From Utricularia gibba (taxonomy: Eukaryota > Plantae > Magnoliophyta): DNA of 29,483 bases. Positions 3,001-27,700 of this stretch are shown here, piece by piece (position 1 is the stretch's first letter; every line of letters starts with the position of its first letter). A program made the translations under genes and the position numbers. The notes beneath the pieces are model-generated. The model searched no databases and had not been told where the DNA came from. It was given only the letters and a program-made list of their open reading frames with translations. The stretch lies in assembly GCA_002189035.1 (NCBI GenBank), contig NEEC01000515.1:1-29483 (forward strand). Direction: 5' to 3'.

Positions 3001-4974
3001 TTACTTTGGGCCAAGGCCTAAGCTGACCTTTTCCGGTTCCAAGTGCCCCCAAGACCGCCTCCTCAAGTATAAAGTAAGTTGTTAAAAAAATCATGTGGGG
3101 TGCACGTGAATCGTAATTTAAACAAATGCATCATTTTTTTTAATCGATTTGCATCCTTTGTCCTCATGAGCCATAAAGAATCGCGGGCCCGGACCAAGTT
3201 CCTAGCGAGACTGGCCGCCACAAAACGAGAAGCTGTTCCTTGAAAAACCATGTAGGCAACACCGAAAACCGAACGTTAATAAATACATCACTTTCTTTGC
3301 CGGGCTACAACTTACTTTGGGCCAAGGCCTAAGCTGATCTTTTTCCGGTTCCAAGTGCACCCAAAGACCGCCTTCTCAAGTATAAAGTAAGTTGTTGAAA
3401 AAATCATGTGGGGGCACGTGACATCATAATTTAAACAAATGGATCATTTTTTTAATCGATTTGCATCCAGTTGACCTCATGAGCCATACAGAATCGGGGT
3501 CAGGACCAAGTTCCCAGCGAGACTGGCCGCCAAAAACGAGAAGCGGTTCCTTGAAAAACCATGTAGGCAGCCCCCGAAAACCGAACGATAATAAATACAT
3601 CACTTTATTTGCCGACTACAACTTACTTTGGGCCAAGCCTAAGCTGACCTTTTTCCGGTTCCAAGTGCCCCCAAGACCGCCTCCTCATGTATAAAGTATG
3701 TTGTTAAAAAAAATCATGTGGGGTGCACGTGATATCGTAATTTAAACAAATGCATCATTTTTTTTAATCGATTTGCATCCTTTGACCTCATGAGCCATAA
3801 AGAATCGCGGGCCCGGACCAAGTTCCTAGCGAGACTGGCCGCCACAAAACGAGAAGCTGTTCCTTGAAAAACCATGTAGGCAACACCGAAAAACCGAACG
3901 TTAATAAATACACTTTCTTTGCCGGGCTACAACTTACTTTGGGCCAAGGCCTAAGCTGATCTTTTTCCGGTTCCAAGTGCCCCCCAAGACCGCCTCCTCA
4001 TGTATAAAGTATGTTGTTAAAAAATCATGTGGGGTGCACGTGACATCGTAATTTAAACAAATGGATCATTTTTTTTAATCGATTTGCATCCAGTTGACCT
4101 CATGAGCCATACAGAATCGGGGTCAAGGACCAAGTTCCCAGCGAGACTGGCCGCACAAAACGAGAAGCGGTTCCTTGAAAAACCATGTAGGCAGCCCCCG
4201 AAAACCGAACGATAATAAATACATCACTTTATTTGCCGACTACAACTAACTCTCGGTGCAAAGCCAAACCTTACCTTTTTCCGGTTCCAGGTGCACCCAA
4301 AGACCGCCTGCTCAAGTATAAAGTAAGTTGTTGAAAAAATCATGTGGGGTGCACGTGATATCGCAATTTAAACAAATGCAACATTGTATTCATCGATTTG
4401 CATCCTTTGTCCTCATGAGCCATAAAGAATCGCGGGCCCGGACCAAGTTCCTAGCGAGACTGGCCGCCACAAAACGAGAAGCTGTTCCTTGAAAAACCAT
4501 GTAGGCAACACCGAAAACCGAACGTTAATAAATACATCACTTTCTTTGCCGGGCTACAACTTACTTTGGGCCAAGGCCTAAGCTGATCTTTTTCCGGTTC
4601 CAAGTGCACCCAAGACCGCCTCCTCATGTATAAAGTAAGTTGTTAAAAAAATCATGTGGGGTGCACGTGACATCGTAATTTAAACAAATGCATCATTTTT
4701 TTTAATCGATTTGCATCCAGTTGACCTCATGAGCCATACAGAATCGGGGTCAGGACCAAGTTCCCAGCGAGACTGGCCGCCACAAAACGAGAAGCGGTTC
4801 CTTGAAAAAACCATGTAGGCAGCCCCCGAAAACCGAACGATAATAAATACATCACTTTATTTGCCGGACTACAACTTACTTTGGGCCAAGGCCTAAGCTG
4901 ACTTTTTCCGGTTCCAAGTGCCCCCAAGACCGCCTCCTCATGTATAAAGTATGTTGTTAAAAAAATCATGTGGG

Positions 4975-5284
4975 GTGCACGTGACATCGTAATTTAAACA
5001 AATGCATCATTTTTTTAAATCGATTTGCATCCATTTGACCTCATGAGCCATAAAGAATCGCGGGCCCGGACCAAGTTCCTAGCGAGACTGGCCGCCACAA
5101 AACGAGAAGCTGTTCCTTGAAAAACCATGTAGGCAGCCCCCGAAAACCGAACGATAATAAATACATCACTTTATTTGCCGGACTACAACTTACTTTGGCA
5201 AGCCAAAGCTTACTTTTCCGTTCCAGGTGCACCCAAAGACCGCCTCTCAAGTATAAAGTAAGTTGTTGAAAAAAATCATGTGGG
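4975..5284 (+). repeat. Chimeric monomer (A-type alleles in first half, B-type alleles in second half) causing an HOR phase slip
   Basis: A alleles run to GCTGTT (T at 5111) and B alleles start at GCAGCCCCCG (G at 5136). It is followed directly by a full A monomer at 5285. Confidence 0.85.
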
Positions 5285-8200
5285 GTGCACGTGATATCGC
5301 AATTTAAACAAATGCAACATTGTATTCATCGATTTGCATCCTTTTGTCCTCATGAGCCATAAAGAATCGCGGGCCCGGACCAAGTTCCTAGCGAGACTGG
5401 CCGCCACAAAACGAGAAGCTGTTCCTTGAAAAACCATGTAGGCAACACCGAAAACCGAACGTTAATAAATACATCACTTTCTTTGCCGGGCTACAACTTA
5501 CTTTGGGCCAAGGCCTAAGCTGATCTTTTTCCGGTTCCAAGTGCACCCAAAGACCGCCTTCTCAAGTATAAAGTAAGTTGTTGAAAAAATCATGTGGGGT
5601 GCACGTGACATCATAATTTAAACAAATGGATCATTTTTTTAATCGATTTGCATCCAGTTGACCTCATGAGCCATACAGAATCGGGGTCAGGACCAAGTTC
5701 CCAGCGAGACTGGCCGCCACAAAACGAGAAGCGGTTCCTTGAAAAACCATGTAGGCAGCCCCGAAAACCGAACGATAATAAATACATCACTTTATTTGCC
5801 GGACTACAACTTACTTTGGGCCAAGGCCTAAGCTGACCTTTTTCCGGTCCAAGTGCCCCCCAAGACCGCCTCCTCATGTATAAAGTATGTTGTTAAAAAA
5901 ATCATGTGGGGTGCACGTGAATCGTAATTTAAACAAATGCATCATTTTTTTTAATCGATTTGCATCCATTTGACCTCATGAGCCATAAAGAATCGCGGGC
6001 CCGGACCAAGTTCCTAGCGAGACTGGCCGCCACAAAACGAGAAGCTTCCTTGAAAAACCATGTAGGCAACACCGAAAACCGAACGTTAATAAATACATCA
6101 CTTTCTTTGCCGGGCTACAACTTACTTTGGGCCAAGGCCTAAGCTGACTTTTTCCGGTTCCAAGTGCACCCAAAGACCGCCTTCTCAAGTATAAAGTAAG
6201 TTGTTGAAAAAATCATGTGGGGTGCACGTGACATCATAATTTAAACAAATGGATCATTTTTTTTAATCGATTTGCATCCAGTTGACCTCATGAGCCATAC
6301 AGAATCGGGGTCAAGGACCAAGTTCCCAGCGAGACTGGCCGCCACAAAACGAGAAGCGGTTCCTTGAAAAACCATGTAGGCAGCCCCGAAAACCGAACGA
6401 TAATAAATACATCACTTTATTTGCCGGACTACAACTACTTTGGGCAAGGCCTAAGCTGACCTTTTTCCGGTTCCAAGTGCCCCCAAGACCGCCTCCTCAA
6501 GTATAAAGTAAGTTGTTAAAAAAATCATGTGGGGTGCACGTGATATCGCAATTTAAACAAATGCATCATTTTTTTCATCGATTTGCATCCTTTGACCTCA
6601 TGAGCCATAAAGAATCGCGGGCCCGGACCAAGTTCCTAGCGAGACTGGCCGCCACAAAACGAGAAGCTGTTCCTTGAAAAACCATGTAGGCAACACCGAA
6701 AACCGAACGTTAATAAATATATCACTTTCTTTGCCGGGCTACAACTTACTTTGGGCCAAGGCCTAAGCTGACCTTTTTCCGGTTCCAAGTGCCCCCCAAG
6801 ACCGCCTCCTCATGTATAAAGTATGTTGTTAAAAAAATCATGTGGGGTGCACGTGACATCGTAATTTAAACAAATGCATCATTTTTTTTAATCGATTTGC
6901 ATCCAGTTGACCTCATGAGCCATACAGAATCGGGGTCAAGGACCAAGTTCCCAGCGAGACTGGCCGCCACAAAACGAGAAGCGGTTCCTTGAAAAACCAT
7001 GTAGGCAGCCCCGAAAACCGAACGATAATAAATACATCACTTTATTTGCCGACTACAACTAACTCTCGGTGCAAGCCAAACCTTACCTTTGTCCGTTCCA
7101 GGTGCACCCAAAGACCGCCTGCTCAAGTATAAAGTAAGTTGTTGAAAAAATCATGTGGGGTGCACGTGATATCGCAATTTAAACAAATGCAACATTGTAT
7201 TCATCGATTTGCATCCTTTTGTCCTCATGAGCCATAAAGAATCGCGGGCCCGGACCAAGTTCCTAGCGAGACTGGCCGCCACAAAACGAGAAGCTGTTCC
7301 TTGAAAAACCATGTAGGCAACACCGAAAACCGAACGTTAATAAATACATCACTTTCTTTGCCGGGCTACAACTTACTTTGGGCCAAGGCCTAAGCTGATC
7401 TTTTTCCGGTTCCAAGTGCCCCCCAAGACCGCCTTCTCAAGTATAAAGTAAGTTGTTAAAAAAATCATGTGGGGTGCACGTGACATCATAATTTAAACAA
7501 ATGCATCATTTTTTTTAATCGATTTGCATCCAGTTGACCTCATGAGCCATACAGAATCGGGGTCAGGACCAAGTTCCCAGCGAGACTGGCCGCCACAAAA
7601 CGAGAAGCGGTTCCTTGAAAAACCATGTAGGCAGCCCCGAAAACCGAACGATAATAAATACATCACTTTATTTGCCGGACTACAACTTACTTTGGGCAAG
7701 GCCTAAGCTGACCTTTTTCCGGTCCAAGTGCCCCCAAGACCGCCTCCTCATGTATAAAGTAAGTTGTTAAAAAAATCATGTGGGGTGCACGTGATATCGT
7801 AATTTAAACAAATGCATCATTTTTTTATCGATTTGCATCCTTTGACCTCATGAGCCATAAAGAATCGCGGGCCCGGACCAAGTTCCTAGCGAGACTGGCC
7901 GCCACAAAACGAGAAGCTGTTCCTTGAAAAACCATGTAGGCAACACCGAAAACCGAACGTTAATAAATACATCACTTTCTTTGCCGGGCTACAACTTACT
8001 TTGGGCCAAGGCCTAAGCTGATCTTTTTCCGGTTCCAGTGCACCCAAAGACCGCCTTCTCAAGTATAAAGTAAGTTGTTGAAAAAAATCATGTGGGGTGC
8101 ACGTGACATCATAATTTAAACAAATGGATCATTTTTTTTAATCGATTTGCATCCAGTTGACCTCATGAGCCATACAGAATCGGGGTCAAGGACCAAGTTC

Positions 8201-9643
8201 CCAGCGAGACTGGCCGCCACAAAACGAGAAGCGGTTCCTTGAAAAACCATGTAGGCAGCCCCGAAAACCGAACGATAATAAATACATCACTTTATTTGCC
8301 GGACTACAACTACTTTGGGCAAGCCAAGCTGACTTTTTCCGGTTCCAAGTGCCCCCAAGACCGCCTCCTCAAGTATAAAGTAAGTTGTTAAAAAAATCAT
8401 GTGGGGTGCACGTGATATCGCAATTTAAACAAATGCATTTTTTTCATCGATTTGCATCCTTTGACCTCATGAGCCATAAAGAATCGCGGGCCCGGACCAA
8501 GTTCCTAGCGAGACTGGCCGCCACAAAACGAGAAGCTGTTCCTTGAAAAACCATGTAGGCAACACCGAAAACCGAACGTTAATAAATACATCACTTCTTT
8601 GCCGGGCTACAACTTACTTTGGGCCAAGGCCTAAGCTGACCTTTTTCCGGTTCCAAGTGCCCCCAAGACCGCCTCCTCATGTATAAAGTATGTTGTTAAA
8701 AAAAATCATGTGGGGTGCACGTGACATCGTAATTTAAACAAATGCATCATTTTTTTTAATCGATTTGCATCCAGTTGACCTCATGAGCCATACAGAATCG
8801 GGGTCAAGGACCAAGTTCCCAGCGAGACTGGCCGCCACAAAACGAGAAGCGGTTCCTTGAAAAACCATGTAGGCAGCCCCCGAAAACCGAACGATAATAA
8901 ATACATCACTTTATTTGCCGGACTACAACTAACTCTCGGTGCAAGCCAAACTTACTTTGTCCCGTTCCAGTGCACCCAAAGACCGCCTGCTCAAGTATAA
9001 AGTAAGTTGTTGAAAAATCATGTGGGGTGCACGTGATATCGCAATTTAAACAAATGCAACATTGTATTCATCGATTTGCATCCTTTGACCTCATGAGCCA
9101 TAAAGAATCGCGGGCCCGGACCAAGTTCCTAGCGAGACTGGCCGCCACAAAACGAGAAGCTGTTCCTTGAAAAACCATGTAGGCAACACCGAAAACCGAA
9201 CGTTAAAAATACATCACTTTCTTTGCCGGGCTACAACTTACTTTGGGCCAAGGCCTAAGCTGACTTTTTCCGGTTCCAAGTGCCCCCAAGACCGCCTCCT
9301 CAAGTATAAAGTAAGTTGTTAAAAAAATCATGTGGGGTGCACGTGACATCATAATTTAAACAAATGCATCATTTTTTTTTAATCGATTTGCATTTTGACC
9401 TCATGAGCCATACAGAATCGGGGTCGAGGACCAAGTTCCCAGCGAGACTGGCCGCCACAAAACGAGAAGCGGTTCCTTGAAAAACCATGTAGGCAGCCCC
9501 CGAAAACCGAACGATAATAAATACATCACTTTATTTGCCGGACTACAACTTACTTTGGGCAAGGCCTAAGCTGACCTTTTTCCCCAAGTGCCCCCAAGAC
9601 CGCCTCCTCATGTATAAAGTATGTTGTTAAAAAATCATGTGGG

Positions 9644-9862
9644 GTGCACGTGAATCGTAATTTAAACAAATGCATCATTTTTTTAATCGATTTGCATCCA
9701 TTTGACCTCATGAGCCATAAGAATCGGGGCCCGGACCAAGTTCCTAGCGAGACTGGCCGCCACAAACGAGAAGCTGTTCCTTGAAAACCATGTAGGCATA
9801 ATAGGCGGTTCCAAGTGACCGCCTCTCAAGTATAAAGTAAGTTGTTGAAAAAATCATGTGGG
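9644..9862 (+). repeat. Truncated monomer (219 bp, ~95 bp missing)
   Basis: After CATGTAGGCA (ends 9798) the sequence reads TAATAGGCGGTTCCAAGTGACCGCC, skipping most of the second half of the monomer. Anchor spacing 9644 to 9863 is 219 bp. Confidence 0.92.
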
Positions 9863-12343
9863 GTGCACGTGATATCGCAATTTAAACAAATGCAACATTG
9901 TATTCATCGATTTGCATCCTTTGTCCTCATGAGCCATAAAGAATCGCGGCCCGGACCAAGTTCCTAGCGAGACTGGCCGCCACAAAACGAGAAGCTGTTC
10001 CTTGAAAAACCATGTAGGCAACACCGAAAACCGAACGTTAATAAATACATCACTTTCTTTGCCGGGCTACAACTTACTTTGGGCCAAGGCCTAAGCTGAT
10101 CTTTTTCCGGTTCCAAGTGCCCCAAGACCGCCTCTCAAGTATAAAGTAAGTTGTTGAAAAATCATGTGGGGTGCACGTGACATCGTAATTTAAACAAATG
10201 CATCATTTTTTTAATCGATTTGCATCCAGTTGACCTCATGAGCCATACAGAATCGGGGTCAGGACCAAGTTCCCAGCGAGACTGGCCGCCACAAAACGAG
10301 AAGCGGTTCCTTGAAAAACCATGTAGGCAGCCCCCGAAAACCGAACGATAATAAATACATCACTTTATTTGCCGGACTACAACTTACTTTGGGCAAGGCC
10401 TAAGCTGACCTTTTTCCGGTCCAAGTGCCCCCAAGACCGCCTCCTCATGTATAAAGTATGTTGTTAAAAAATCATGTGGGGTGCACGTGACATCGTAATT
10501 TAAACAAATGCATCATTTTTTTAATCGATTTGCATCCTTTTGACCTCATGAGCCATAAAGAATCGCGGGCCCGGACCAAGTTCCTAGCGAGACTGGCCGC
10601 CACAAAACGAGAAGCTTTCCTTGAAAAACCATGTAGGCAACACCGAAAACCGAACGTTAATAAATACATCACTTTCTTTGCCGGGCTACAACTTACTTTG
10701 GGCCAAGGCCTAAGCTGATCTTTTCCGGTTCCAAGTGCACCCAAAGACCGCCTCTCAAGTATAAAGTAAGTTGTTGAAAAAATCATGTGGGGTGCACGTG
10801 ACATCAAATTTAAACAAATGCATCATTTTTTTAATCGATTTGCATCCAGTTGACCTCATGAGCCATACAGAATCGGGGTCAAGGACCAAGTTCCCAGCGA
10901 GACTGGCCGCCACAAACGAGAAGCGGTTCCTTGAAAAACCATGTAGGCAGCCCCCGAAAACCGAACGATAATAAATACATCACTTTATTTGCCGGACTAC
11001 AACTTACTTTGGGCCAAGGCCTAAGCTGACTTTTTCCGGTTCCAAGTGCCCCCAAGACCGCCTCTCATGTATAAAGTATGTTGTTAAAAAAAATCATGTG
11101 GGGTGCACGTGACATCGTAATTTAAACAAATGCATCATTTTTTTTAATCGATTTGCATCCTTTTGACCTCATGAGCCATAAAGAATCGCGGGCCCGGACC
11201 AAGTTCCTAGCGAGACTGGCCGCCACAAAACGAGAAGCTGTTCCTTGAAAAACCATGTAGGCAACACCGAAAACCGAACGTTAATAAATATATCACTTTC
11301 TTTGCCGGGCTACAACTTACTTTGGGCCAAGGCCTAAGCTGACCTTTTTCCGGTTCCAAGTGCCCCCAAGACCGCCTCCTCAAGTATAAGTATGTTAAAA
11401 AAATCATGTGGGGTGCACGTGACATCGTAATTTAAACAAATGCATCATTTTTTTTAATCGATTTGCATCCAGTTGACCTCATGAGCCATACAGAATCGGG
11501 GTCAAGGACCAAGTTCCCAGCGAGACTGGCCGCCACAAAACGAGAAGCGGTTCCTTGAAAAACCATGTAGGCAGCCCCCGAAAACCGAACGATAATAAAT
11601 ACATCACTTTATTTGCCGGACTACAACTAACTCTCGTGCAAGCCAAACTTACCTTTGTCCCGTTCCAGGTGCACCCAAAGACCGCCTGCTCAAGTATAAA
11701 GTAAGTTGTTGAAAAAATCATGTGGGGTGCACGTGATATCGCAATTTAAACAAATGCAACATTGTATTCATCGATTTGCATCCTTTGTCCTCATGAGCCA
11801 TAAAGAATCGCGGGCCCGGACCAAGTTCCTAGCGAGACTGGCCGCCACAAAACGAGAAGCTGTTCCTTGAAAAACCATGTAGGCAACACCGAAAACCGAA
11901 CGTTAATAAATACATCACTTTCTTTGCCGGGCTACAACTTACTTTGGGCCAAGGCCTAAGCTGACCTTTTTCCGGTTCCAAGTGCCCCCCAAGACCGCCT
12001 CCTCATGTATAAAGTATGTTGTTAAAAAAATCATGTGGGGTGCACGTGACATCGTAATTTAAACAAATGCATCATTTTTTTTAATCGATTTGCATCCAGT
12101 TGACCTCATGAGCCATACAGAATCGGGGTCAAGGACCAAGTTCCCAGCGAGACTGGCCGCCACAAAACGAGAAGCGGTTCCTTGAAAAACCATGTAGGCA
12201 GCCCCGAAAACCGAACGATAATAAATACATCACTTTATTTGCCGGACTACAACTTACTTTGGGCCAAGGCCTAAGCTGACCTTTTTCCGGTTGCCCAAGA
12301 CCGCCTCTCATGTATAAAGTAAGTTGTTAAAAAATCATGTGGG

Positions 12344-12649
12344 GTGCACGTGATCGAATTTAAACAAATGCATCATTTTTTTTAATCGATTTGCATCCAG
12401 TTGACCTCATGAGCCATAAAGAATCGGGGCCCGGACCAAGTTCCTAGCGAGACTGGCCGCCACAAAACGAGAAGCTGTTCCTTGAAAAACCATGTAGGCA
12501 GCCCCCGAAAACCGAACGATAATAAATACATCACTTATTTGCCGGACTACAACTAACTTCGGCAAGCCAAACCTTCTTTGTCCCGTTCCAGGTGCACCCA
12601 AAGACCGCCTTCTCAAGTATAAAGTAAGTTGTTGAAAAAATCATGTGGG
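12344..12649 (+). repeat. Chimeric monomer (A-type first half, B-type second half) causing an HOR phase slip
   Basis: A alleles run to T at 12476 and B alleles start at G 12501. It is followed by a full A monomer at 12650. Confidence 0.85.
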
Positions 12650-15600
12650 GTGCACGTGATATCGCAATTTAAACAAATGCACATTGTATTCATCGATTTG
12701 CATCCTTTTGTCCTCATGAGCCATAAAGAATCGCGGGCCCGGACCAAGTTCCTAGCGAGACTGGCCGCCACAAAACGAGAAGCTGTTCCTTGAAAAACCA
12801 TGTAGGCAACACCGAAAACCGAACGTTAATAAATACATCACTTTCTTTGCCGGGCTACAACTTACTTTGGGCCAAGGCCTAAGCTGATCTTTTTCCGGTT
12901 CCAAGTGCACCCAAAGACCGCCTTCTCAAGTATAAAGTAAGTTGTTGAAAAAATCATGTGGGGTGCACGTGACATCATAATTTAAACAAATGCATCATTT
13001 TTTTTAATCGATTTGCATCCAGTTGACCTCATGAGCCATACAGAATCGGGGTCAGGACCAAGTTCCCAGCGAGACTGGCCGCCACAAAACGAGAAGCGGT
13101 TCAAAACCATGTAGGCAGCCCCCGAAAACCGAACGATAATAAATACATCACTTTATTTGCCGGACTACAACTTACTTTGGGCCAAGGCCTAAGCTGACCT
13201 TTTTCCGGTTCCAAGTGCCCCCAAGACCGCCTCCTCATGTATAAAGTATGTTGTTTAAAAAAATCATGTGGGGTGCACGTGAGATCGTAATTTAAACAAA
13301 TGCATTTTTTTTTTAATCGATTTGCATCCTTTGACCTCATGAGCCATAAAGAATCGCGGGCCCGGACCAAGTTCCTAGCGAGACTGGCCGCCACAAAACG
13401 AGAAGCTGTTCCTTGAAAAACCATGTAGGCAACACCGAAAACCGAACGTTAATAAATACATCACTTTCTTTGCCGGGCTACAACTTACTTTGGGCCAAGG
13501 CCTAAGCTGACCTTTTTCCGGTTCCAAGTGCCCCCAAGACCGCCTCTCATGTATAAAGTATGTTGTTAAAAAATCATGTGGGGTGCACGTGACATCGTAA
13601 TTTAAACAAATGCATCATTTTTTTTAATCGATTTGCATCCAGTTGACCTCATGAGCCATACAGAATCGGGGTCAAGGACCAAGTTCCCAGCGAGACTGGC
13701 CGCCACAAAACGAGAAGCGGTTCCTTGAAAAACCATGTAGGCAGCCCCCGAAAACCGAACGATAATAAATACATCACTTTATTTGCCGACTACAACTAAC
13801 TTCGGGCAAGCCAAACCTTACCTTTGTCCGTTCCAGTGCACCCAAAGACCGCCTGCTCAAGTATAAAGTAAGTTGTTGAAAAAATCATGTGGGGTGCACG
13901 TGATATCGCAATTTAAACAAATGCAACATTGTATTCATCGATTTGCATCCATTTGACCTCATGAGCCATAAAGAATCGCGGGCCCGGACCAAGTTCCTAG
14001 CGAGACTGGCCGCCACAAAACGAGAAGCTGTTCCTTGAAAAACCATGTAGGCAACACCGAAAACCGAACGTTAATAAATACATCACTTTCTTTGCCGGGC
14101 TACAACTTACTTTGGGCCAAGGCCTAAGCTGATCTTTTTCCGGTTCCAAGTGCACCCAAAGACCGCCTTCTCAAGTATAAAGTAAGTTGTTGAAAAAATC
14201 ATGTGGGGTGCACGTGACATCATAATTTAACAAATGGATCATTTTTTTTAATCGATTTGCATCCAGTTGACCTCATGAGCCATACAGAATCGGGGTCAAG
14301 GACCAAGTTCCCAGCGAGACTGGCCGCCACAAAACGAGAAGCGGTTCCTTGAAAAACCATGTAGGCAGCCCCGAAACCGAACGATAATAAATACATCACT
14401 TTATTTGCCGGACTACAACTAACTCTTGCAAGCCAAACCTTACCTTTGTCCCGTTCCAGTGCACCCAAAGACCGCCTGCTCAAGTATAAAGTAAGTTGTT
14501 GAAAAAATCATGTGGGGTGCACGTGATATCGCAATTTAAACAAATGCAACATTGTATTCATCGATTTGCATCCTTTTGTCCTCATGAGCCATAAAGAATC
14601 GCGGCCCGGACCAAGTTCCTAGCGAGACTGGCCGCCACAAAACGAGAAGCTGTTCCTTGAAAAACCATGTAGGCAACACCGAAAACCGAACGTTAATAAA
14701 TACATCACTTTCTTTGCCGGGCTACAACTTACTTTGGGCCAAGGCCTAAGCTGATCTTTTTCCGGTTCCAAGTGCACCCAAAGACCGCCTTCTCAAGTAT
14801 AAAGTAAGTTGTTGAAAAAATCATGTGGGGTGCACGTGACATCATAATTTAAACAAATGGATCATTTTTTTTAATCGATTTGCATCCAGTTGACCTCATG
14901 AGCCATACAGAATCGGGGTCAAGGACCAAGTTCCCAGCGAGACTGGCCGCCAAAAACGAGAAGCGGTTCCTTGAAAAACCATGTAGGCAGCCCCCGAAAA
15001 CCGAACGATAATAAATACATCACTTTATTTGCCGGACTACAACTTACTTGGGCCAAGCCTAAGCTGACCTTTTTCCGGTCCAAGTGCCCCCCAAGACCGC
15101 CTCCTCATGTATAAAGTATGTTCTTAAAAAATCATGTGGGGTGCACGTGAGATCGTAATTTAAACAAATGATCATTTTTTTAATCGATTTGCATCCTTTT
15201 GTCCTCATGAGCCATAAAGAATCGCGGGCCCGGACCAAGTTCCTAGCGAGACTGGCCGCCACAAAACGAGAAGCTGTTCCTTGAAAAACCATGTAGGCAA
15301 CACCGAAAACCGAACGTTAATAAATACATCACTTTCTTTGCCGGGCTACAACTTACTTTGGGCCAAGGCCTAAGCTGATCTTTTTTCCGGTTCCAAGTGC
15401 ACCCAAAGACCGCCTTCTCAAGTATAAAGTAAGTTGTTGAAAAAAATCATGTGGGGTGCACGTGACATCATAATTTAAACAAATGGATCATTTTTTTTTA
15501 ATCGATTTGCATCCAGTTGACCTCATGAGCCATACAGAATCGGGGTCAAGGACCAAGTTCCCAGCGAGACTGGCCGCCACAAAACGAGAAGCGGTTCCTT

Positions 15601-16084
15601 GAAAAACCATGTAGGCAGCCCCCGAAAACCGAACGATAATAAATACATCACTTTATTTTCCGGACTACAACTAACTCTCGGTGCAAGCCAAACCTTACCT
15701 TTGTCCCGTTCCAGGTGCACCCAAAGACCGCCTGCTCAAGTATAAAGTAAGTTGTTGAAAAAATCATGTGGGGTGCACGTGATATCGCAATTTAAACAAA
15801 TGCAACATTGTATTCATCGATTTGCATCCTTTTGTCCTCATGAGCCATAAAGAATCGCGGGCCCGGACCAAGTTCCTAGCGAGACTGGCCGCCACAAAAC
15901 GAGAAGCTGTTCCTTGAAAAACCATGTAGGCAACACGAAAACCGAACGTTAATAAATACATCACTTTCTTTGCCGGGCTACAACTTACTTTGGGCCAAGG
16001 CCTAAGCTGATCTTTTTCCGGTTCCAAGTGCACCCAAAGACCGCCTTCTCAAGTATAAAGTAAGTTGTTGAAAAAATCATGTGG

Positions 16085-16096
16085 GGTGCACGTGAC
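16085..16096. other. Overlapping palindromes GTGCAC/CACGTG (E-box/G-box core) present once per monomer; representative copy
   Basis: GGTGCACGTGA[C/T] is seen in essentially every monomer. The motif is visible in the sequence, but protein binding is not demonstrated. Confidence 0.6.
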
Positions 16097-16724
16097 ATCA
16101 TAATTTAAACAAATGGATCATTTTTTTTAATCGATTTGCATCCAGTTGACCTCATGAGCCATACAGAATCGGGGTCAAGGACCAAGTTCCCAGCGAGACT
16201 GGCCGCCACAAAACGAGAAGCGGTTCCTTGAAAAACCATGTAGGCAGCCCCCGAAAACCGAACGATAATAAATACATCACTTTATTTGCCGGACTACAAC
16301 TAACTCTCGGTGCAAGCCAAACCTTACCTTTGTCCCGTTCCAGGTGCACCAAAGACCGCCTGCTCAAGTATAAAGTAAGTTGTTGAAAAAATCATGTGGG
16401 GTGCACGTGATATCGCAATTTAAACAAATGCAACATTGTATTCATCGATTTGCATCCTTTTGTCCTCATGAGCCATAAAGAATCGCGGGCCCGGACCAAG
16501 TTTCCTAGCGAGACTGGCCGCCACAAAACGAGAAGCTGTTCCTTGAAAAACCATGTAGGCAACACGAAAACCGAACGTTAATAAATACATCACTTTCTTT
16601 GCCGGGCTACAACTTACTTTGGGCCAAGGCCTAAGCTGATCTTTTTCCGGTTCCAAGTGCACCCAAAGACCGCCTTCTCAAGTATAAAGTAAGTTGTTGA
16701 AAAAATCATGTGGGGTGCACGTGA

Positions 16725-17040
16725 CATCATAATTTAAACAAATGGATCATTTTTTTTAATCGATTTGCATCCAGTTGACCTCATGAGCCATACAGAATCG
16801 GGGTCAAGGACCAAGTTCCCAGCGAGACTGGCCGCCACAAAACGAGAAGCGGTTCCTTGAAAAACCATGTAGGCAGCCCCCGAAAACCGAACGATAATAA
16901 ATACATCACTTTATTTGCCGGACTACAACTAACTCTCGGTGCAAGCCAAACCTTACCTTTGTCCCGTTCCAGGTGCACCCAAAGACCGCCTGCTCAAGTA
17001 TAAAGTAAGTTGTTGAAAAAATCATGTGGGGTGCACGTGA
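16725..17040 (+). repeat. Representative B-type monomer (316 bp)
   Basis: Diagnostic alleles: CATCATAATT, GGATCATTTTTTTTAATC, CCAGTTGACC, CATACAG, GGGGTCAAGG, TCCCAG, GCGGTT, GCAGCCCCCG, ACGATA, CTAACTCTCGGTGCAAGCCAAACCTTACC, CCTGCTC. Confidence 0.95.
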
Positions 17041-18290
17041 TATCGCAATTTAAACAAATGCAACATTGTATTCATCGATTTGCATCCTTTTGTCCTCATG
17101 AGCCATAAAGAATCGCGGGCCCGGACCAAGTTCCTAGCGAGACTGGCCGCCACAAAACGAGAAGCTGTTCCTTGAAAAACCATGTAGGCAACACGAAAAC
17201 CGAACGTTAATAAATACATCACTTTCTTTGCCGGGCTACAACTTACTTTGGGCCAAGGCCTAAGCTGATCTTTTTCCGGTTCCAAGTGCACCCAAAGACC
17301 GCCTTCTCAAGTATAAAGTAAGTTAAAAAATCATGTGGGGTGCACGTGACATCATAATTTAAACAAATGGATCATTTTTTTTAATCGATTTGCATCCAGT
17401 TGACCTCATGAGCCATACAGAATCGGGGTCAAGGACCAAGTTCCCAGCGAGACTGGCCGCCACAAAACGAGAAGCGGTTCCTTGAAAAACCATGTAGGCA
17501 GCCCCCGAAAACCGAACGATAATAAATACATCACTTTATTTGCCGGACTACAACTACTTTGGGCAAGCCAAACCTACCTTTTTCCGTTCCAAGTGCCCCC
17601 AAGACCGCCTCCTCAAGTATAAAGTAAGTTGTTTAAAAAATCATGTGGGGTGCACGTGATATCGCAATTTAAACAAATGCAACATTTTTTTCATCGATTT
17701 GCATCCTTTTGTCCTCATGAGCCATAAAGAATCGCGGGCCCGGACCAAGTTCCTAGCGAGACTGGCCGCCACAAAACGAGAAGCTGTTCCTTGAAAAACC
17801 ATGTAGGCAACACCGAAAACCGAACGTTAATAAATACATCACTTTCTTTGCCGGGCTACAACTTACTTTGGGCCAAGGCCTAAGCTGATCTTTTTCCGGT
17901 TCCAAGTGCACCCAAAGACCGCCTTCTCAAGTATAAAGTAAGTTGTTGAAAAAATCATGTGGGGTGCACGTGACATCATAATTTAAACAAATGGATCATT
18001 TTTTTTAATCGATTTGCATCCAGTTGACCTCATGAGCCATACAGAATCGGGGTCAAGGACCAAGTTCCCAGCGAGACTGGCCGCCACAAAACGAGAAGCG
18101 GTTCCTTGAAAAACCATGTAGGCAGCCCCCGAAAACCGAACGATAATAAATACATCACTTTATTTTGCCGGACTACAACTAACTCTCGGTGCAAGCCAAA
18201 CCTTACCTTTGTCCCGTTCCAGGTGCACCCAAAGACCGCCTGCTCAAGTATAAAGTAAGTTGTTGAAAAAATCATGTGGGGTGCACGTGA

Positions 18291-18604
18291 TATCGCAATT
18301 TAAACAAATGCAACATTGTATTCATCGATTTGCATCCTTTTGTCCTCATGAGCCATAAAGAATCGCGGGCCCGGACCAAGTTCCTAGCGAGACTGGCCGC
18401 CACAAAACGAGAAGCTGTTCCTTGAAAAACCATGTAGGCAACACCGAAAACCGAACGTTAATAAATACATCACTTTCTTTGCCGGGCTACAACTTACTTT
18501 GGGCCAAGGCCTAAGCTGATCTTTTTCCGGTTCCAAGTGCACCCAAAGACCGCCTTCTCAAGTATAAAGTAAGTTGTTGAAAAAATCATGTGGGGTGCAC
18601 GTGA
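18291..18604 (+). repeat. Representative A-type monomer (314 bp)
   Basis: Diagnostic alleles: TATCGCAATT, GCAACATTGTATTC, CCTTTTGTCC, CATAAAG, CGCGGGCCCGG, TCCTAG, GCTGTT, GCAACACCG, ACGTTA, CTTACTTTGGGCCAAGGCCTAAGCTGATC, CCTTCTC. GC is 140/314 (~45%) by hand count. Confidence 0.95.
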
Positions 18605-19858
18605 CATCATAATTTAAACAAATGATCATTTTTTTTAATCGATTTGCATCCAGTTGACCTCATGAGCCATACAGAATCGGGGTCAAGGACCAAGTTCCCA
18701 GCGAGACTGGCCGCCACAAAACGAGAAGCGGTTCCTTGAAAAACCATGTAGGCAGCCCCCGAAAACCGAACGATAATAAATACATCACTTTATTTGCCGG
18801 ACTACAACTAACTCTCGGTGCAAGCCAAACCTTACCTTTGTCCCGTTCCAGGTGCACCCAAAGACCGCCTGCTCAAGTATAAAGTAAGTTGTTGAAAAAA
18901 TCATGTGGGGTGCACGTGATATCGCAATTTAAACAAATGCAACATTGTATTCATCGATTTGCATCCTTTTGTCCTCATGAGCCATAAAGAATCGCGGGCC
19001 CGGACCAAGTTCCTAGCGAGACTGGCCGCCACAAAACGAGAAGCTGTTCCTTGAAAAACCATGTAGGCAACACCGAAAACCGAACGTTAATAAATACATC
19101 ACTTTCTTTGCCGGGCTACAACTTACTTTGGGCCAAGGCCTAAGCTGATCTTTTTCCGGTTCCAAGTGCACCCAAAGACCGCCTTCTCAAGTATAAAGTA
19201 AGTTGTTGAAAAAATCATGTGGGGTGCACGTGACATCATAATTTAAACAAATGGATCATTTTTTAATCGATTTGCATCCAGTTGACCTCATGAGCCATAC
19301 AGAATCGGGGTCAAGGACCAAGTTCCCAGCGAGACTGGCCGCCACAAAACGAGAAGCGGTTCCTTGAAAAACCATGTAGGCAGCCCCCGAAAACCGAACG
19401 ATAATAAATACATCACTTTATTTGCCGGACTACAACTAACTTCGGGCAAGCCAAACCTTACCTTTTTCCGTTCCAAGTGCACCCCAAGACCGCCTCCTCA
19501 GTATAAAGTAAGTTGTTGAAAAAATCATGTGGGGTGCACGTGATATCGCAATTTAAACAAATGCAACATTTTTTTTCATCGATTTGCATCCTTTTGTCCT
19601 CATGAGCCATAAAGAATCGCGGGCCCGGACCAAGTTCCTAGCGAGACTGGCCGCCACAAAACGAGAAGCTGTTCCTTGAAAAACCATGTAGGCAACACCG
19701 AAAACCGAACGTTAATAAATACATCACTTTCTTTGCCGGGCTACAACTTACTTTGGGCCAAGGCCTAAGCTGATCTTTTTCCGGTTCCAAGTGCACCCAA
19801 AGACCGCCTTCTCAAGTATAAAGTAAGTTGTTGAAAAAATCATGTGGGGTGCACGTGA

Positions 19859-20488
19859 CATCATAATTTAAACAAATGGATCATTTTTTTTAATCGATTT
19901 GCATCCAGTTGACCTCATGAGCCATACAGAATCGGGGTCAAGGACCAAGTTCCCAGCGAGACTGGCCGCCACAAAACGAGAAGCGGTTCCTTGAAAAACC
20001 ATGTAGGCAGCCCCCGAAAACCGAACGATAATAAATACATCACTTTATTTGCCGGACTACAACTAACTCTCGGTGCAAGCCAAACCTTACCTTTGTCCCG
20101 TTCCAGGTGCACCCAAAGACCGCCTGCTCAAGTATAAAGTAAGTTGTTGAAAAAATCATGTGGGGTGCACGTGATATCGCAATTTAAACAAATGCAACAT
20201 TGTATTCATCGATTTGCATCCTTTTGTCCTCATGAGCCATAAAGAATCGCGGGCCCGGACCAAGTTCCTAGCGAGACTGGCCGCCACAAAACGAGAAGCT
20301 GTTCCTTGAAAAACCATGTAGGCAACACCGAAAACCGAACGTTAATAAATACATCACTTTCTTTGCCGGGCTACAACTTACTTTGGGCCAAGGCCTAAGC
20401 TGATCTTTTTCCGGTTCCAAGTGCACCCAAAGACCGCCTTCTCAAGTATAAAGTAAGTTGTTGAAAAAATCATGTGGGGTGCACGTGA
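19859..20488 (+). repeat. Representative 630-bp higher-order repeat unit (B monomer 19859-20174 + A monomer 20175-20488)
   Basis: Anchors at 19849, 20165 and 20479 give 316 + 314 = 630 bp. Every second monomer is near-identical, while adjacent monomers differ at ~40 positions. Confidence 0.97.
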
Positions 20489-21400
20489 CATCATAATTTA
20501 AACAAATGGATCATTTTTTTAATCGATTTGCATCCAGTTGACCTCATGAGCCATACAGAATCGGGGTCAAGGACCAAGTTCCCAGCGAGACTGGCCGCCA
20601 CAAAACGAGAAGCGGTTCCTTGAAAAACCATGTAGGCAGCCCCCGAAAACCGAACGATAATAAATACATCACTTTATTTGCCGGACTACAACTAACTCTC
20701 GGTGCAAGCCAAACCTTACCTTTGTCCCGTTCCAGGTGCACCCAAAGACCGCCTGCTCAAGTATAAAGTAAGTTGTTGAAAAAATCATGTGGGGTGCACG
20801 TGATATCGCAATTTAAACAAATGCAACATTGTATTCATCGATTTGCATCCTTTTGTCCTCATGAGCCATAAAGAATCGCGGGCCGGACCAAGTTCCTAGC
20901 GAGACTGGCCGCCACAAAACGAGAAGCTGTTCCTTGAAAAACCATGTAGGCAACACCGAAAACCGAACGTTAATAAATACATCACTTTCTTTGCCGGGCT
21001 ACAACTTACTTTGGGCCAAGGCCTAAGCTGATCTTTTTCCGGTTCCAAGTGCACCCAAAGACCGCCTTCTCAAGTATAAAGTAAGTGTTGAAAAAATCAT
21101 GTGGGGTGCACGTGACATCATAATTTAAACAAATGGATCATTTTTTTTAATCGATTTGCATCCAGTTGACCTCATGAGCCATACAGAATCGGGGTCAAGG
21201 ACCAAGTTCCCAGCGAGACTGGCCGCCAAAACGAGAAGCGGTTCCTTGAAAAACCATGTAGGCACCCCGAAAACCGAACGATAATAAATACATCACTTTA
21301 TTTGCCGGACTACAACTTACTTTGGGCAAGCCCTACCTTTTCCGTTCCAAGTGCCCCCAAGACCGCCTCTCAAGTATAAAGTAAGAAAAAATCATGTGGG

Positions 21401-21706
21401 GTGCACGTGACATCGTAATTTAAACAAATGATCATTTTTAATCGATTTGCATCCAGTTGACCTCATGAGCCATAAAGAATCGGGGCCCGGACCAAGTTCC
21501 AGCGAGACTGGCCGCCACAAAACGAGAAGCTGTTCCTTGAAAAACCATGTAGGCAACCCGAAAACCGAACGTTAATAAATACATCACTTTCTTTGCCGGG
21601 CTACAACTTACTTTGGGCAAGCCTAAGCTGACCTTTTTCCGGTTCCAAGTGCACCCAAAGACCGCCTTCTCAAGTATAAAGTAAGTTGTTGAAAAAATCA
21701 TGTGGG
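21401..21706 (+). repeat. Chimeric monomer (B/C-type start, A-type remainder) causing an HOR phase slip
   Basis: It begins CATCGTAATT...CCAGTTGACC (B/C-like), then has A alleles from CATAAAG (~21470) onward. It is followed by another A monomer at 21707. Confidence 0.8.
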
Positions 21707-24700
21707 GTGCACGTGATATCGCAATTTAAACAAATGCAACATTGTATTCATCGATTTGCATCCTTTTGTCCTCATGAGCCATAAAGAATCGGGCCCGGAC
21801 CAAGTTCCTAGCGAGACTGGCCGCCACAAAACGAGAAGCTGTTCCTTGAAAAACCATGTAGGCAACACCGAAAACCGAACGTTAATAAATACATCACTTT
21901 CTTTGCCGGCTACAACTTACTTTGGGCCAAGGCCTAAGCTGATCTTTTTCCGGTTCCAAGTGCACCCAAAGACCGCCTTCTCAAGTATAAAGTAAGTTGT
22001 TGAAAAAATCATGTGGGGTGCACGTGACATCATAATTTAAACAAATGATCATTTTTTTTAATCGATTTGCATCCAGTTGACCTCATGAGCCATACAGAAT
22101 CGGGGTCAAGGACCAAGTTCCCAGCGAGACTGGCCGCCACAAAACGAGAAGCGGTTCCTTGAAAAACCATGTAGGCAGCCCCCGAAAACCGAACGATAAT
22201 AAATACATCACTTTTTGCCGGACTACAACTAACTTCGGCCAAGCCAAACCTTACCTTTGTCCGTTCCAGGTGCACCCAAAGACCGCCTGCTCAAGTATAA
22301 AGTAAGTTGTTGAAAAAATCATGTGGGGTGCACGTGATATCGCAATTTAAACAAATGCAACATTGTATTCATCGATTTGCATCCTTTTGTCCTCATGAGC
22401 CATAAAGAATCGCGGGCCCGGACCAAGTTCCTAGCGAGACTGGCCGCCACAAAACGAGAAGCTGTTCCTTGAAAAACCATGTAGGCAACACCGAAAACCG
22501 AACGTTAATAAATACATCACTTTCTTTGCCGGGCTACAACTTACTTTGGGCCAAGGCCTAAGCTGATTTTTCCGGTTCCAAGTGCACCCAAAGACCGCCT
22601 TCTCAAGTATAAAGTAAGTTGTTGAAAAAATCATGTGGGGTGCACGTGACATCATAATTTAAACAAATGGATCATTTTTTTAATCGATTTGCATCCAGTT
22701 GACCTCATGAGCCATACAGAATCGGGGTCAAGGACCAAGTTCCCAGCGAGACTGGCCGCCACAAAACGAGAAGCGGTTCCTTGAAAAACCATGTAGGCAG
22801 CCCCCGAAAACCGAACGATAATAAATACATCACTTTATTTGCCGGACTACAACTAACCAAGCCAAACCTTACCTTTTTCCGTTCCAAGTGCACCCAAAGA
22901 CCGCCTCTCAGTATAAAGTAAGTTGTTAAAAAATCATGTGGGGTGCACGTGATATCGCAATTTAAACAAATGATTTGCATCCTTTTGTCCTCATGAGCCA
23001 TAAAGAATCGCGGGCCCGGACCAAGTTCCTAGCGAGACTGGCCGCCACAAAACGAGAAGCTGTTCCTTGAAAAACCATGTAGGCAACACGAAAACCGAAC
23101 GTTAATAAATACATCACTTTCTTTGCCGGGCTACAACTTACTTTGGGCCAAGGCCTAAGCTGATCTTTTTCCGGTTCCAAGTGCACCCAAAGACCGCCTT
23201 CTCAAGTATAAAGTAAGTTGTTGAAAAAATCATGTGGGGTGCACGTGACATCATAATTTAAACAAATGGATCATTTTTTTTAATCGATTTGCATCCAGTT
23301 GACCTCATGAGCCATACAGAATCGGGGTCAAGGACCAAGTTCCCAGCGAGACTGGCCGCCACAAAACGAGAAGCGGTTCCTTGAAAAACCATGTAGGCAG
23401 CCCCCGAAAACCGAACGATAATAAATACATCACTTTATTTGCCGGACTACAACTAACTCTCGGTGCAAGCCAAACCTTACCTTTGTCCCGTTCCAGTGCA
23501 CCCAAAGACCGCCTGCTCAAGTATAAAGTAAGTTGTTAAAAAATCATGTGGGGTGCACGTGATATCGCAATTTAAACAAATGCAACATTGTATTCATCGA
23601 TTTGCATCCTTTGTCCTCATGAGCCATAAAGAATCGCGGGCCCGGACCAAGTTCCTAGCGAGACTGGCCGCCACAAAACGAGAAGCTGTTCCTTGAAAAA
23701 CCATGTAGGCAACACCGAAAACCGAACGTTAATAAATACATCACTTTCTTTGCCGGGCTACAACTTACTTTGGGCCAAGGCCTAAGCTGATCTTTTTCCG
23801 GTTCCAAGTGCACCCAAAGACCGCCTTCTCAAGTATAAAGTAAGTTGTTGAAAAAATCATGTGGGGTGCACGTGACATCATAATTTAAACAAATGGATCA
23901 TTTTTTTTAATCGATTTGCATCCAGTTGACCTCATGAGCCATACAGAATCGGGGTCAAGGACCAAGTTCCCAGCGAGACTGGCCGCCACAAAACGAGAAG
24001 CGGTTCCTTGAAAAACCATGTAGGCAGCCCCCGAAAACCGAACGATAATAAATACATCACTTTATTTGCCGGACTACAACTAACTCTCGGTGCAAGCCAA
24101 ACCTTACCTTTGTCCCGTTCCAGGTGCACCCAAAGACCGCCCTCAAGTATAAAGTAAGTTGAAAAAATCATGTGGGGTGCACGTGATATCGCAATTTAAA
24201 CAAATGCAACATTGTATTCATCGATTTGCATCCTTTTGTCCTCATGAGCCATAAAGAATCGCGGGCCCGGACCAAGTTCCTAGCGAGACTGGCCGCCACA
24301 AAACGAGAAGCTGTTCCTTGAAAAACCATGTAGGCAACACCGAAAACCGAAACGTTAATAAATACATCACTTTCTTTGCCGGGCTACAACTTACTTTGGG
24401 CCAAGGCCTAAGCTGATCTTTTTCCGGTTCCAAGTGCACCCAAAGACCGCCTTCTCAAGTATAAAGTAAGTTGTTGAAAAAATCATGTGTGCACGTGACA
24501 TCATAATTAAACAAATGGATCATTTTTTTTAATCGATTTGCATCCAGTTGACCTCATGAGCCATACAGAAGGTCGACCAAGTTCCCAGCGAGACTGGCCG
24601 CCACAAACGAGAAGCGGTTCCTTGAAAAACCATGTAGGCAGCCCCCGAAAACCGAACGATAATAAATACATCACTTTATTTGCCGGACTACAACTAACAT

Positions 24701-27700
24701 GCAAGCCAAACCTTACCTTTGTCCGTTCCAGTGCACCCAAAGACCGCCTGCTCAAGTATAAAGTAAGTTGTTGAAAAAATCATGTGGGGTGCACGTGATA
24801 TCGCAATTTAAACAAATGCAACATTGTATTCATCGATTTGCATCCTTTTGTCCTCATGAGCCATAAAGAATCGCGGGCCCGGACCAAGTTCCTAGCGAGA
24901 CTGGCCGCCACAAAACGAGAAGCTGTTCCTTGAAAAACCATGTAGGCAACACCGAAAACCGAACGTTAATAAATACATCACTTTCTTTGCCGGGCTACAA
25001 CTTACTTTGGGCCAAGGCCTAAGCTGATCTTTTTCCGGTTCCAAGTGCACCCAAAGACCGCCTTCTCAGTATAAAGTAAGTTGTTGAAAAAATCATGTGG
25101 GGTGCACGTGACATCATAATTTAAACAAATGGATCATTTTTTTAATCGATTTGCATCCAGTTGACCTCATGAGCCATACAGAATCGGGTCAAGGACCAAG
25201 TTCCCAGCGAGACTGGCCGCCACAAAACGAGAAGCGGTTCCTTGAAAAACCATGTAGGCAGCCCCCGAAAACCGAACGATAATAAATACATCACTTTATT
25301 TGCCGGACTACAACTAACTCTCGGGCAAGCCAAACCTACCTTTTTTCCGTTCCAGGTGCCCCAAGACCGCCTCTCAAGTATAAAGTAAGTTGTTGAAAAA
25401 ATCATGTGGGTGCACGTGATATCGCAATTTAAACAAATGCAACATCATCGATTTGCATCCTTTTGTCCTCATGAGCCATAAAGAATCGCGGGCCCGGACC
25501 AAGTTCCTAGCGAGACTGGCCGCCACAAAACGAGAAGCTGTTCCTTGAAAAACCATGTAGGCAACACGAAAACCGAACGTTAATAAATACATCACTTTCT
25601 TTGCCGGGCTACAACTTACTTTGGGCCAAGGCCTAAGCTGATCTTTTTCCGGTTCCAAGTGCACCCAAAGACCGCCTTCTCAAGTATAAAGTAAGTTGTT
25701 GAAAAAATCATGTGGGTGCACGTGACATCATAATTTAAACAAATGGATCATTTTTTTAATCGATTTGCATCCAGTTGACCTCATGAGCCATACAGAATCG
25801 GGGTCAAGGACCAAGTTCCCAGCGAGACTGGCCGCCACAAAACGAGAAGCGGTTCCTTGAAAAACCATGTAGGCAGCCCCGAAAACCGAACGATAATAAA
25901 TACATCACTTTATTTGCCGGACTACAACTAACTCTCGGTGCAAGCCAAACCTTACCTTTGTCCCGTTCCAGGTGCACCCAAAGACCGCCTGCTCAAGTAT
26001 AAAGTAAGTTGTTGAAAAAATCATGTGGGGTGCACGTGATATCGCAATTTAAACAAATGCAACATTGTATTCATCGATTTGCATCCTTTTGTCCTCATGA
26101 GCCATAAAGAATCGCGGGCCCGGACCAAGTTCCTAGCGAGACTGGCCGCCACAAAACGAGAAGCTGTTCCTGAAAAACCATGTAGGCAACACGAAAACCG
26201 AACGTTAATAAATACATCACTTTCTTTGCCGGGCTACAACTTACTTTGGGCCAAGGCCTAAGCTGATCTTTTTCCGGTTCCAAGTGCACCCAAAGACCGC
26301 CTTCTCAAGTATAAAGTAAGTTGTTTGAAAAAATCATGTGGGGTGCACGTGACATCATAATTTAAACAAATGGATCATTTTTTTTAATCGATTTGCATCC
26401 AGTTGACCTCATGAGCCATACAATCGGGGTCAAGGACCAAGTTCCCAGCGAGACTGGCCGCCACAAAACGAGAAGCGGTTCCTTGAAAAACCATGTAGGC
26501 AGCCCCCGAAAACCGAACGATAATAAATACATCACTTTATTTGCCGGACTACAACTAACTCTCGGTGCAAGCCAAACCTTACCTTTGTCCCGTTCCAGGT
26601 GCACCCAAAGACCGCCTCCTCAAGTATAAAGTAAGTTGTTGAAAAAATCATGTGGGGTGCACGTGATATCGCAATTTAAACAAATGCAACATTGTATTCA
26701 TCGATTTGCATCCTTTTGTCCTCATGAGCCATAAAGAATCGCGGGCCCGGACCAAGTTCCTAGCGAGACTGGCCGCCACAAAACGAGAAGCTGTTCCTTG
26801 AAAAACCATGTAGCAACACCGAAAACCGAACGTTAATAAATACATCACTTTCTTTGCCGGGCTACAACTTACTTTGGGCCAAGGCCTAAGCTGATCTTTT
26901 TCCGGTTCCAAGTGCACCCAAAGACCGCCTTCTCAAGTATAAAGTAAGTTGTTGAAAAAATCATGTGGGGTGCACGTGACATCATAATTTAAACAAATGG
27001 ATCATTTTTTTTAATCGATTTGCATCCAGTTGACCTCATGAGCCATACAGAATCGGGTCAAGGACCAAGTTCCCAGCGAGACTGGCCGCCACAAAACGAG
27101 AAGCGGTTCCTTGAAAAACCATGTAGGCAGCCCCGAAAACCGAACGATAATAAATACATCACTTTATTTGCCGGACTACAACTAACGCAAGCCAAACCTT
27201 ACCTTTTTCCGTTCCAAGTGCCCCCAAGACCGCCTCCTCAATAAAGTTGAAAAAATCATGTGGGTGCACGTGATATCGCAATTTAAACAAATGCAACATT
27301 GTATTCATCGATTTGCATCCTTTTGTCCTCATGAGCCATAAAGAATCGCGGGCCCGGACCAAGTTCCTAGCGAGACTGGCCGCCACAAAACGAGAAGCTG
27401 TTCCTTGAAAAACCATGTAGGCAACACCGAAAACCGAACGTTAATAAATACATCACTTTCTTTGCCGGGCTACAACTTACTTTGGGCCAAGGCCTAAGCT
27501 GATCTTTTTCCGGTTCCAAGTGCACCCAAAGACCGCCTTCTCAAGTATAAAGTAAGTTGTTGAAAAAATCATGTGGGGTGCACGTGACATCATAATTTAA
27601 ACAAATGATCATTTTTTTTTAATCGATTTGCATCCAGTTGACCTCATGAGCCATACAGAATCGGGTCAAGGACCAAGTTCCCAGCGAGACTGGCCGCCAC

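Follow-up and report, generated by a model that had tools for sequence, protein, structure and literature searches.

A 314-bp satellite monomer of Utricularia gibba as a probable diverged dimer of ~157-bp subunits in a four-subunit higher-order repeat

Introduction

Nested doubling of nucleosome-sized units is a standard, well-known way in which satellites grow. In alpha-satellite dimers, one of the two units bears a CENP-B box, and their binding of CENP-A has been shown. Among plants, the ~327-bp pBV unit of Beta vulgaris has been described as consisting of two ~160-bp subrepeats, and the repeats CentC of maize (156 bp) and CentO of rice (155 bp) are centromeric in these grasses. In primate dimeric alpha-satellite of suprachromosomal families 1-2, two alternating units of nucleosome size that differ by at most ~30% are homogenised as a ~340-bp unit, with higher-order repeats (HORs) on top (PMC8122249). 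The Drosophila satellite Responder consists of two 120-bp units with 84% identity, and a satellite of Palorus subdepressus has passed from 72-bp units to 144-bp dimers (PMC8122249). Plant satellites typically have units of 160-180 bp or 320-370 bp, whatever their chromosomal location (PMC2820488). Silene latifolia contains both the subtelomeric satellite X43.1, with a 313-bp consensus linked to rDNA-spacer subrepeats, and the 159-bp satellite 15Ssp (PMC3212565).

Here, we analyse a satellite array of Utricularia gibba (assembly GCA_002189035.1, contig NEEC01000515.1). The window is the whole stretch of 29,483 nucleotides that was analysed. We follow up an original prediction, made from these letters, that the monomer of the array is itself a dimer and that its higher-order repeat has four parts.

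Results

The entire 29.5-kb window (1..29483, + strand) is one tandem satellite array without interruption, which extends past both window ends. TRF and anchor spacing delimit 94 full monomers with a period of 314 bp, alternating between two types, A and B. Over 1-29483, TRF returned a period of 314 only, in 31.4 and 63.2 copies, and the sole irregularity lies at ~9.6-10.0 kb. Monomers were anchored on one conserved 25-mer, giving 95 anchors and 94 intervals, 93 of which measure 294-318 bp. The remaining interval of 219 bp is a truncated unit (9620-9838) with ~95 bp lost from the middle of the second subunit (S2, defined below), and TRF assigns the region 9598-10020 a local period of 220 bp. 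Throughout the window, GC content stays at 0.44-0.45, strand skews are constant, and no other DNA is inserted in the array within these 29.5 kb. Homopolymer run length (A7, T8; consensus 1-15 and 61-75, e.g. 15758-15764) is part of the variation between monomers, and this component could be long-read sequencing error rather than true polymorphism.

The array is plain non-coding plant satellite DNA. Reading frames are irregular with no consistent frame, and the four longest ORFs tested have zero matches to Pfam families. Folding the unit as single-strand DNA gave no better result than shuffles (z +1.4), with no dyad symmetry or hairpin potential. An Rfam scan of both strands at 15000-17000 found only one chance-level miRNA match (E 0.28). 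The scan of these two kilobases gave no sign of a satellite of the 5S, tRNA or hammerhead-ribozyme type.

For the analysis of half-units, the first subunit (S1) was set to begin at GTTGTTGAAAAAAT with a length of 158-159 nt, and S2 at GTTCCTTGAAAAACC with ~156 nt. A complete four-subunit HOR unit at 15751-16378 on the + strand illustrates the arrangement, with a B-type monomer followed by an A-type monomer. The B-type monomer comprises S1 at 15751..15908 (158 nt, + strand) and S2 at 15909..16063 (155 nt, + strand), the latter a diverged copy of the former with 63.5% identity over ungapped columns. The following A-type monomer comprises S1 at 16064..16222 (159 nt, + strand) and S2 at 16223..16378 (156 nt, + strand).

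The original prediction derived the ~157-bp subunits from three block pairs at offsets of 159, 157 and 155, and all six coordinates proved exact. The pairs are 15755-15778 with 15914-15936 (18 of 24 columns identical, offset 159), 15792-15807 with 15949-15963 (12/16, offset 157) and 15863-15886 with 16018-16043 (16/27, offset 155). The predicted periodicity near 157 bp was recovered as well. Ungapped autocorrelation of the raw window had a maximum of 0.341 at lag 157 against a median of 0.254, with values of 0.302, 0.323, 0.341 and 0.317 at lags 155, 156, 157 and 158. The value at 314 was 0.384, the peak being smeared by indels. Secondary autocorrelation peaks at lags 23, 135 and 180 reflect scattered short matches within the shuffle range.

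Half-unit similarity also exceeds that of shuffled sequence, as had been anticipated. At every cut point of the 315-nt consensus the two halves were aligned globally and the best result was kept, with dinucleotide-preserving shuffles (n=300) treated alike. The observed score was 8 compared to -19.1 +/- 5.4 in shuffles, which had a maximum of 0 (z = 5.0, 0/300). In the best alignment, 94 of the 149 ungapped columns (63%) are identical. Significance was judged on one unit because all monomers descend from one founder. A single 314-bp founder for all 94 monomers amounts to one independent observation of S1-S2 similarity and not 94. Over 91 individual monomers, S1-S2 identity was 61.4 +/- 1.7% of ungapped columns and 55.8% with gaps counted. 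Overall, S1 and S2 are 61-63% identical in gapped alignments and 49-52% in the near-gapless four-way MAFFT alignment, which has few gaps. The claim that the ~315-bp monomer consists of two diverged ~157-bp subunits was upheld by autocorrelation, by the alignment (z = 5.0) and by the nhmmer searches described below.

Base composition carries a related signal. In both WW and GC composition, power is raised at the even harmonic of 157 bp (p ~0.006-0.01) but not at the fundamental, the pattern that a dimer would give. The sixth harmonic, at 52.5 bp, is reached by 0.2-1.6% of shuffles (p ~0.002-0.016), and AT-rich patches recur every ~52.5 bp in the consensus monomer (e.g. 15751-16063), a distance of roughly five helical turns. 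These patches could be phased A-tracts or reflect curvature, though once multiple testing is considered the signal is marginal. A further ~52-bp layer beneath the subunit (157 = 3 x 52) was rejected, since the six ~52-nt segments are no more alike than shuffles (53/200), and no repeat layer shorter than 157 bp was found.

Homology between S1 and S2 is uneven along the subunit. About the first 65 nt hold most of the signal, and the remainder is weak yet collinear and in register. The best-conserved part of S1 (15755..15815, + strand) opens with the box TTGAAAAAATCATGTGGGG. Its S2 counterpart (15914..15972, + strand), identified by blastn and nhmmer, opens with TTGAAAAACCATGTAGG, and the 18-mers of this S2 block are exact in 90 of the ~94 monomers. 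Comparing S1 to S2, blastn returned one 61-nt block (S1 5-65, S2 6-64) of 67% identity (E = 6e-4). With a profile of all S1 copies, nhmmer aligned positions 6-66 to S2 (8.0 bits, E = 2e-4). Conversely, the S2 profile aligned to B-type S1 over profile positions 7-135, or ~130 of 157 nt (8.6 bits, E = 1.6e-4), the only nhmmer alignment to continue past position ~65. The best score among 2000 shuffled targets was 3.8 bits, compared to the 8.0-8.6 observed. When thirds were cut out of the already optimised global alignment, the first third of the subunit stood well apart from shuffles (z = 5.2, 0/1000), and the middle and last thirds were marginal (z = 2.1 each, 35/1000 and 33/1000).

The original prediction further proposed a ~630-bp HOR. 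The repeat is real and measures ~627 bp for A plus B. Across the 94 monomers aligned with MAFFT, neighbouring units (lag 1) share a mean identity of 0.861 and units two apart (lag 2) one of 0.938, and the odd/even alternation is still present at lag 12. Clustering separates 47 A-type from 46 B-type monomers, in addition to the one truncated unit, and the two types alternate strictly save for three slips. Between the A and B consensus sequences identity is 88%, compared to 93% within A and 96% within B. As proposed, the HOR is a tetramer (S1A-S2A-S1B-S2B), because each 314-bp monomer within the ~627-bp A/B repeat is itself a diverged dimer.

The three A/B phase slips are located at 4951-5260 (AA), 12320-12625 (AA) and 21378-21682 (BB). 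The slips at 4951-5260 and 12320-12625 are chimeras that combine B-like S1 with A-like S2. Their switch point falls in alignment columns 166-192, at the S1-to-S2 junction and within the longest tract that is identical between A and B. Both chimeric slips reflect ordinary exchange of A with B at a shift of one full unit, not exchange of S1 with S2. The exchanges that form chimeras sit where A/B homology is best. At 21378-21682, the breakpoint is ambiguous.

A separate irregularity distinguishes the two sides of the window. Between 3076 and 15431, many left-half B-type monomers (m009, m011, m018, m024, m033, m035, m042 and m048) are A-like at the S1 diagnostic columns 42-87, forming a conversion-like patch. 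Rightward from ~15.4 kb, the A/B pattern is nearly perfectly clean. The patch on the left and the clean pattern on the right indicate that the window spans two differently homogenised domains.

At present, the array evolves solely in the 314- and 627-bp registers. None of the 94 anchor intervals corresponds to a unit of ~157 or ~471 bp. Per-column variability has no 157-bp period; at this lag, its autocorrelation lies between -0.02 and -0.10. The most invariant stretch (consensus ~121-215) spans the S1-to-S2 junction, and the S2-to-S1 junction is more variable. S1 and S2 no longer behave as equivalent units.

Discussion

The nested identities of the subunits give the order in which the array was built. 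Subunits at the same position are 88.6% (S1A-S1B) and 90.3% (S2A-S2B) identical in consensus, compared to 49-52% for every S1-S2 pair in the same alignment and up to 63% in gapped alignments. The step from 157 to 314 bp must therefore be much older than the step from 314 to 627 bp. Jukes-Cantor distances are ~0.5-0.8 substitutions per site between S1 and S2, ~0.13 between A and B, and ~0.05 within types. The predicted order of ~157 to ~315 to 630 bp accordingly stands, with measured lengths of 157, 314 and 627 bp.

We consider it likely, with a probability of roughly 0.85, that the 314-bp unit represents two neighbouring ~157-bp tandem copies that diverged and were then amplified together. Two adjacent copies of a ~157-bp repeat would have diverged from one another. 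Unequal crossing-over and gene conversion might then have shifted to a two-unit register, with the S1+S2 pair being amplified and homogenised as the new unit. The same step one level up would have produced alternating 314-bp variants A and B, homogenised as the ~627-bp four-subunit HOR. We infer the ancestral ~157-bp monomer from this one array, and likewise the recombination mechanism behind the doubling.

The concentration of signal in one part of the subunit bears on a different origin, in which one copying event duplicated a ~60-65-nt segment within a 314-bp unit that had otherwise never been dimeric, leaving the ~157-bp spacing incidental. Such a copy would match the end of both the blastn and the S1-profile nhmmer alignments at about position 65, and the middle and last thirds of the subunit barely beat shuffles. 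However, the weaker matches stay collinear at offsets of 155-159 over the remaining unit, the third block (CCGG..CCAAGT) sits ~110 nt into the subunit, and the S2-profile alignment continues to profile position 135. The subunits are also almost equal in length (158-159 versus 156 nt), and the 157-bp harmonic is present in base composition. We regard a single segment copy as improbable, and duplication of the whole subunit as the better reading.

The depth of the S1-S2 divergence (37-50% different) could also suggest that the 314-bp unit joined monomers from two related ~157-bp families, or rDNA-spacer subrepeats, instead of arising by divergence in place. For the Silene satellite X43.1, likewise of 313 bp, an origin in rDNA-spacer subrepeats has been described (PMC3212565). 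Yet nothing in the window sets such a joining apart from in-place divergence, and the Rfam scan of 15000-17000 contained no rRNA-related sequence. A joined origin appears even less probable than the copying of a short segment. It is extremely unlikely that the half-units are similar by chance, or that they converged, without common descent, on a repeated motif for protein binding or bending. In favour of such an explanation, 11 of 2000 shuffles reach the observed value of 0.352 at some lag when the consensus is autocorrelated on a circle without gaps. This test is weaker, though, as the offset shifts along the unit from 159 to 155. The tests that allow gaps gave clear results (0/300 for the halves, 0/1000 for the first third and 0/2000 for nhmmer), and the similarity is far longer than a motif-sized box. 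In-place divergence of two tandem copies is the preferred origin of the 314-bp unit.

The length of the subunits invites the question of a centromeric or nucleosome-phasing role, an idea that the original prediction raised tentatively and that none of the sequence tests favoured. Monomer length is not diagnostic of centromeres, because the size classes of plant satellites are common to all chromosomal locations (PMC2820488). A ~10-bp WW periodicity is absent, with the power at 9-11.5 bp being reached by 619 of 1000 shuffles, and so are dyad symmetry and a 157-bp period of constraint. No retrotransposon insertions, including those of centromere-targeting CRM elements, are found in the 29.5-kb array; the absence of CRM is weak evidence because a window this short may miss insertions. 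Our best estimate is that the array is heterochromatic satellite DNA, and a centromeric role seems rather unlikely. Both subunits share a ~60-nt block with the box TTGAAAAA-N(1-2)-CATGTRGG, which is nearly invariant over the 94 monomers. By analogy with human alpha-satellite, this block might be a putative retained protein-binding or nucleosome-positioning site, recurring at one-nucleosome spacing, in a CENH3-bound array with the dimer as the working unit, a scenario we hold to be distinctly improbable. If true, the array would be an example from plants of centromeric chromatin phased by dimers.

Three nested amplification steps, at 157, 314 and 627 bp, are recorded in one plant satellite. This is of use for satellite annotation and for the design of S1- and S2-specific FISH probes. 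The array raises no new question, the doubling route being already well known. Its weight would rise only if chromatin data showed the dimer to be the phasing unit of CENH3 nucleosomes, or if the 157-bp ancestor proved to derive from the rDNA spacer.

The satellite family may be undescribed; the way it is built is a familiar one. Six conserved 15-20-mers had no match among about 8.4 million papers, and nothing relevant was found in the literature on plant satellites of 313, 314, 315 or 157 bp. No 313/314-bp family appears in the text of the preprint on the centromere atlas of the Darwin Tree of Life. Among metagenome contigs, one satellite 20-mer had no match and another had one chance match only. 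The contig concerned, Ga0129308_1004258 (4855-4874), was rejected as a relative since its flanks are non-repetitive and unrelated.

Among plants, several described satellites have similar lengths. At 157 and 314 bp, the units fall at or just below the typical plant size classes, as represented by pEV and pBV of Beta vulgaris (PMC2820488), in a comparison of length only. The maize and rice repeats CentC and CentO, compared by length only, share with the subunit a length of about one nucleosome. X43.1 and 15Ssp of Silene form the same length pair (313 and 159 bp) within one plant genome. Identity with either family was rejected on the 50 nt per family covered by the published FISH probes, which aligned to our consensus no better than their shuffled versions did, with z <= 2.2 for X43.1 and <0 for 15Ssp.

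Similar architectures are found among animals, although the array is not known to resemble any of the human satellite classes. Responder of Drosophila and the Palorus satellite are diverged tandem dimers like the monomer described here, but they come from animals, differ in unit length and have far less diverged halves. The alpha-satellite dimers of primates follow the same nesting logic, which is here represented by S1 and S2 and then by A and B, and the likeness is one of architecture only. With 37-50% of positions differing between S1 and S2, the divergence within the U. gibba dimer is deeper than that between the units of alpha-satellite dimers.
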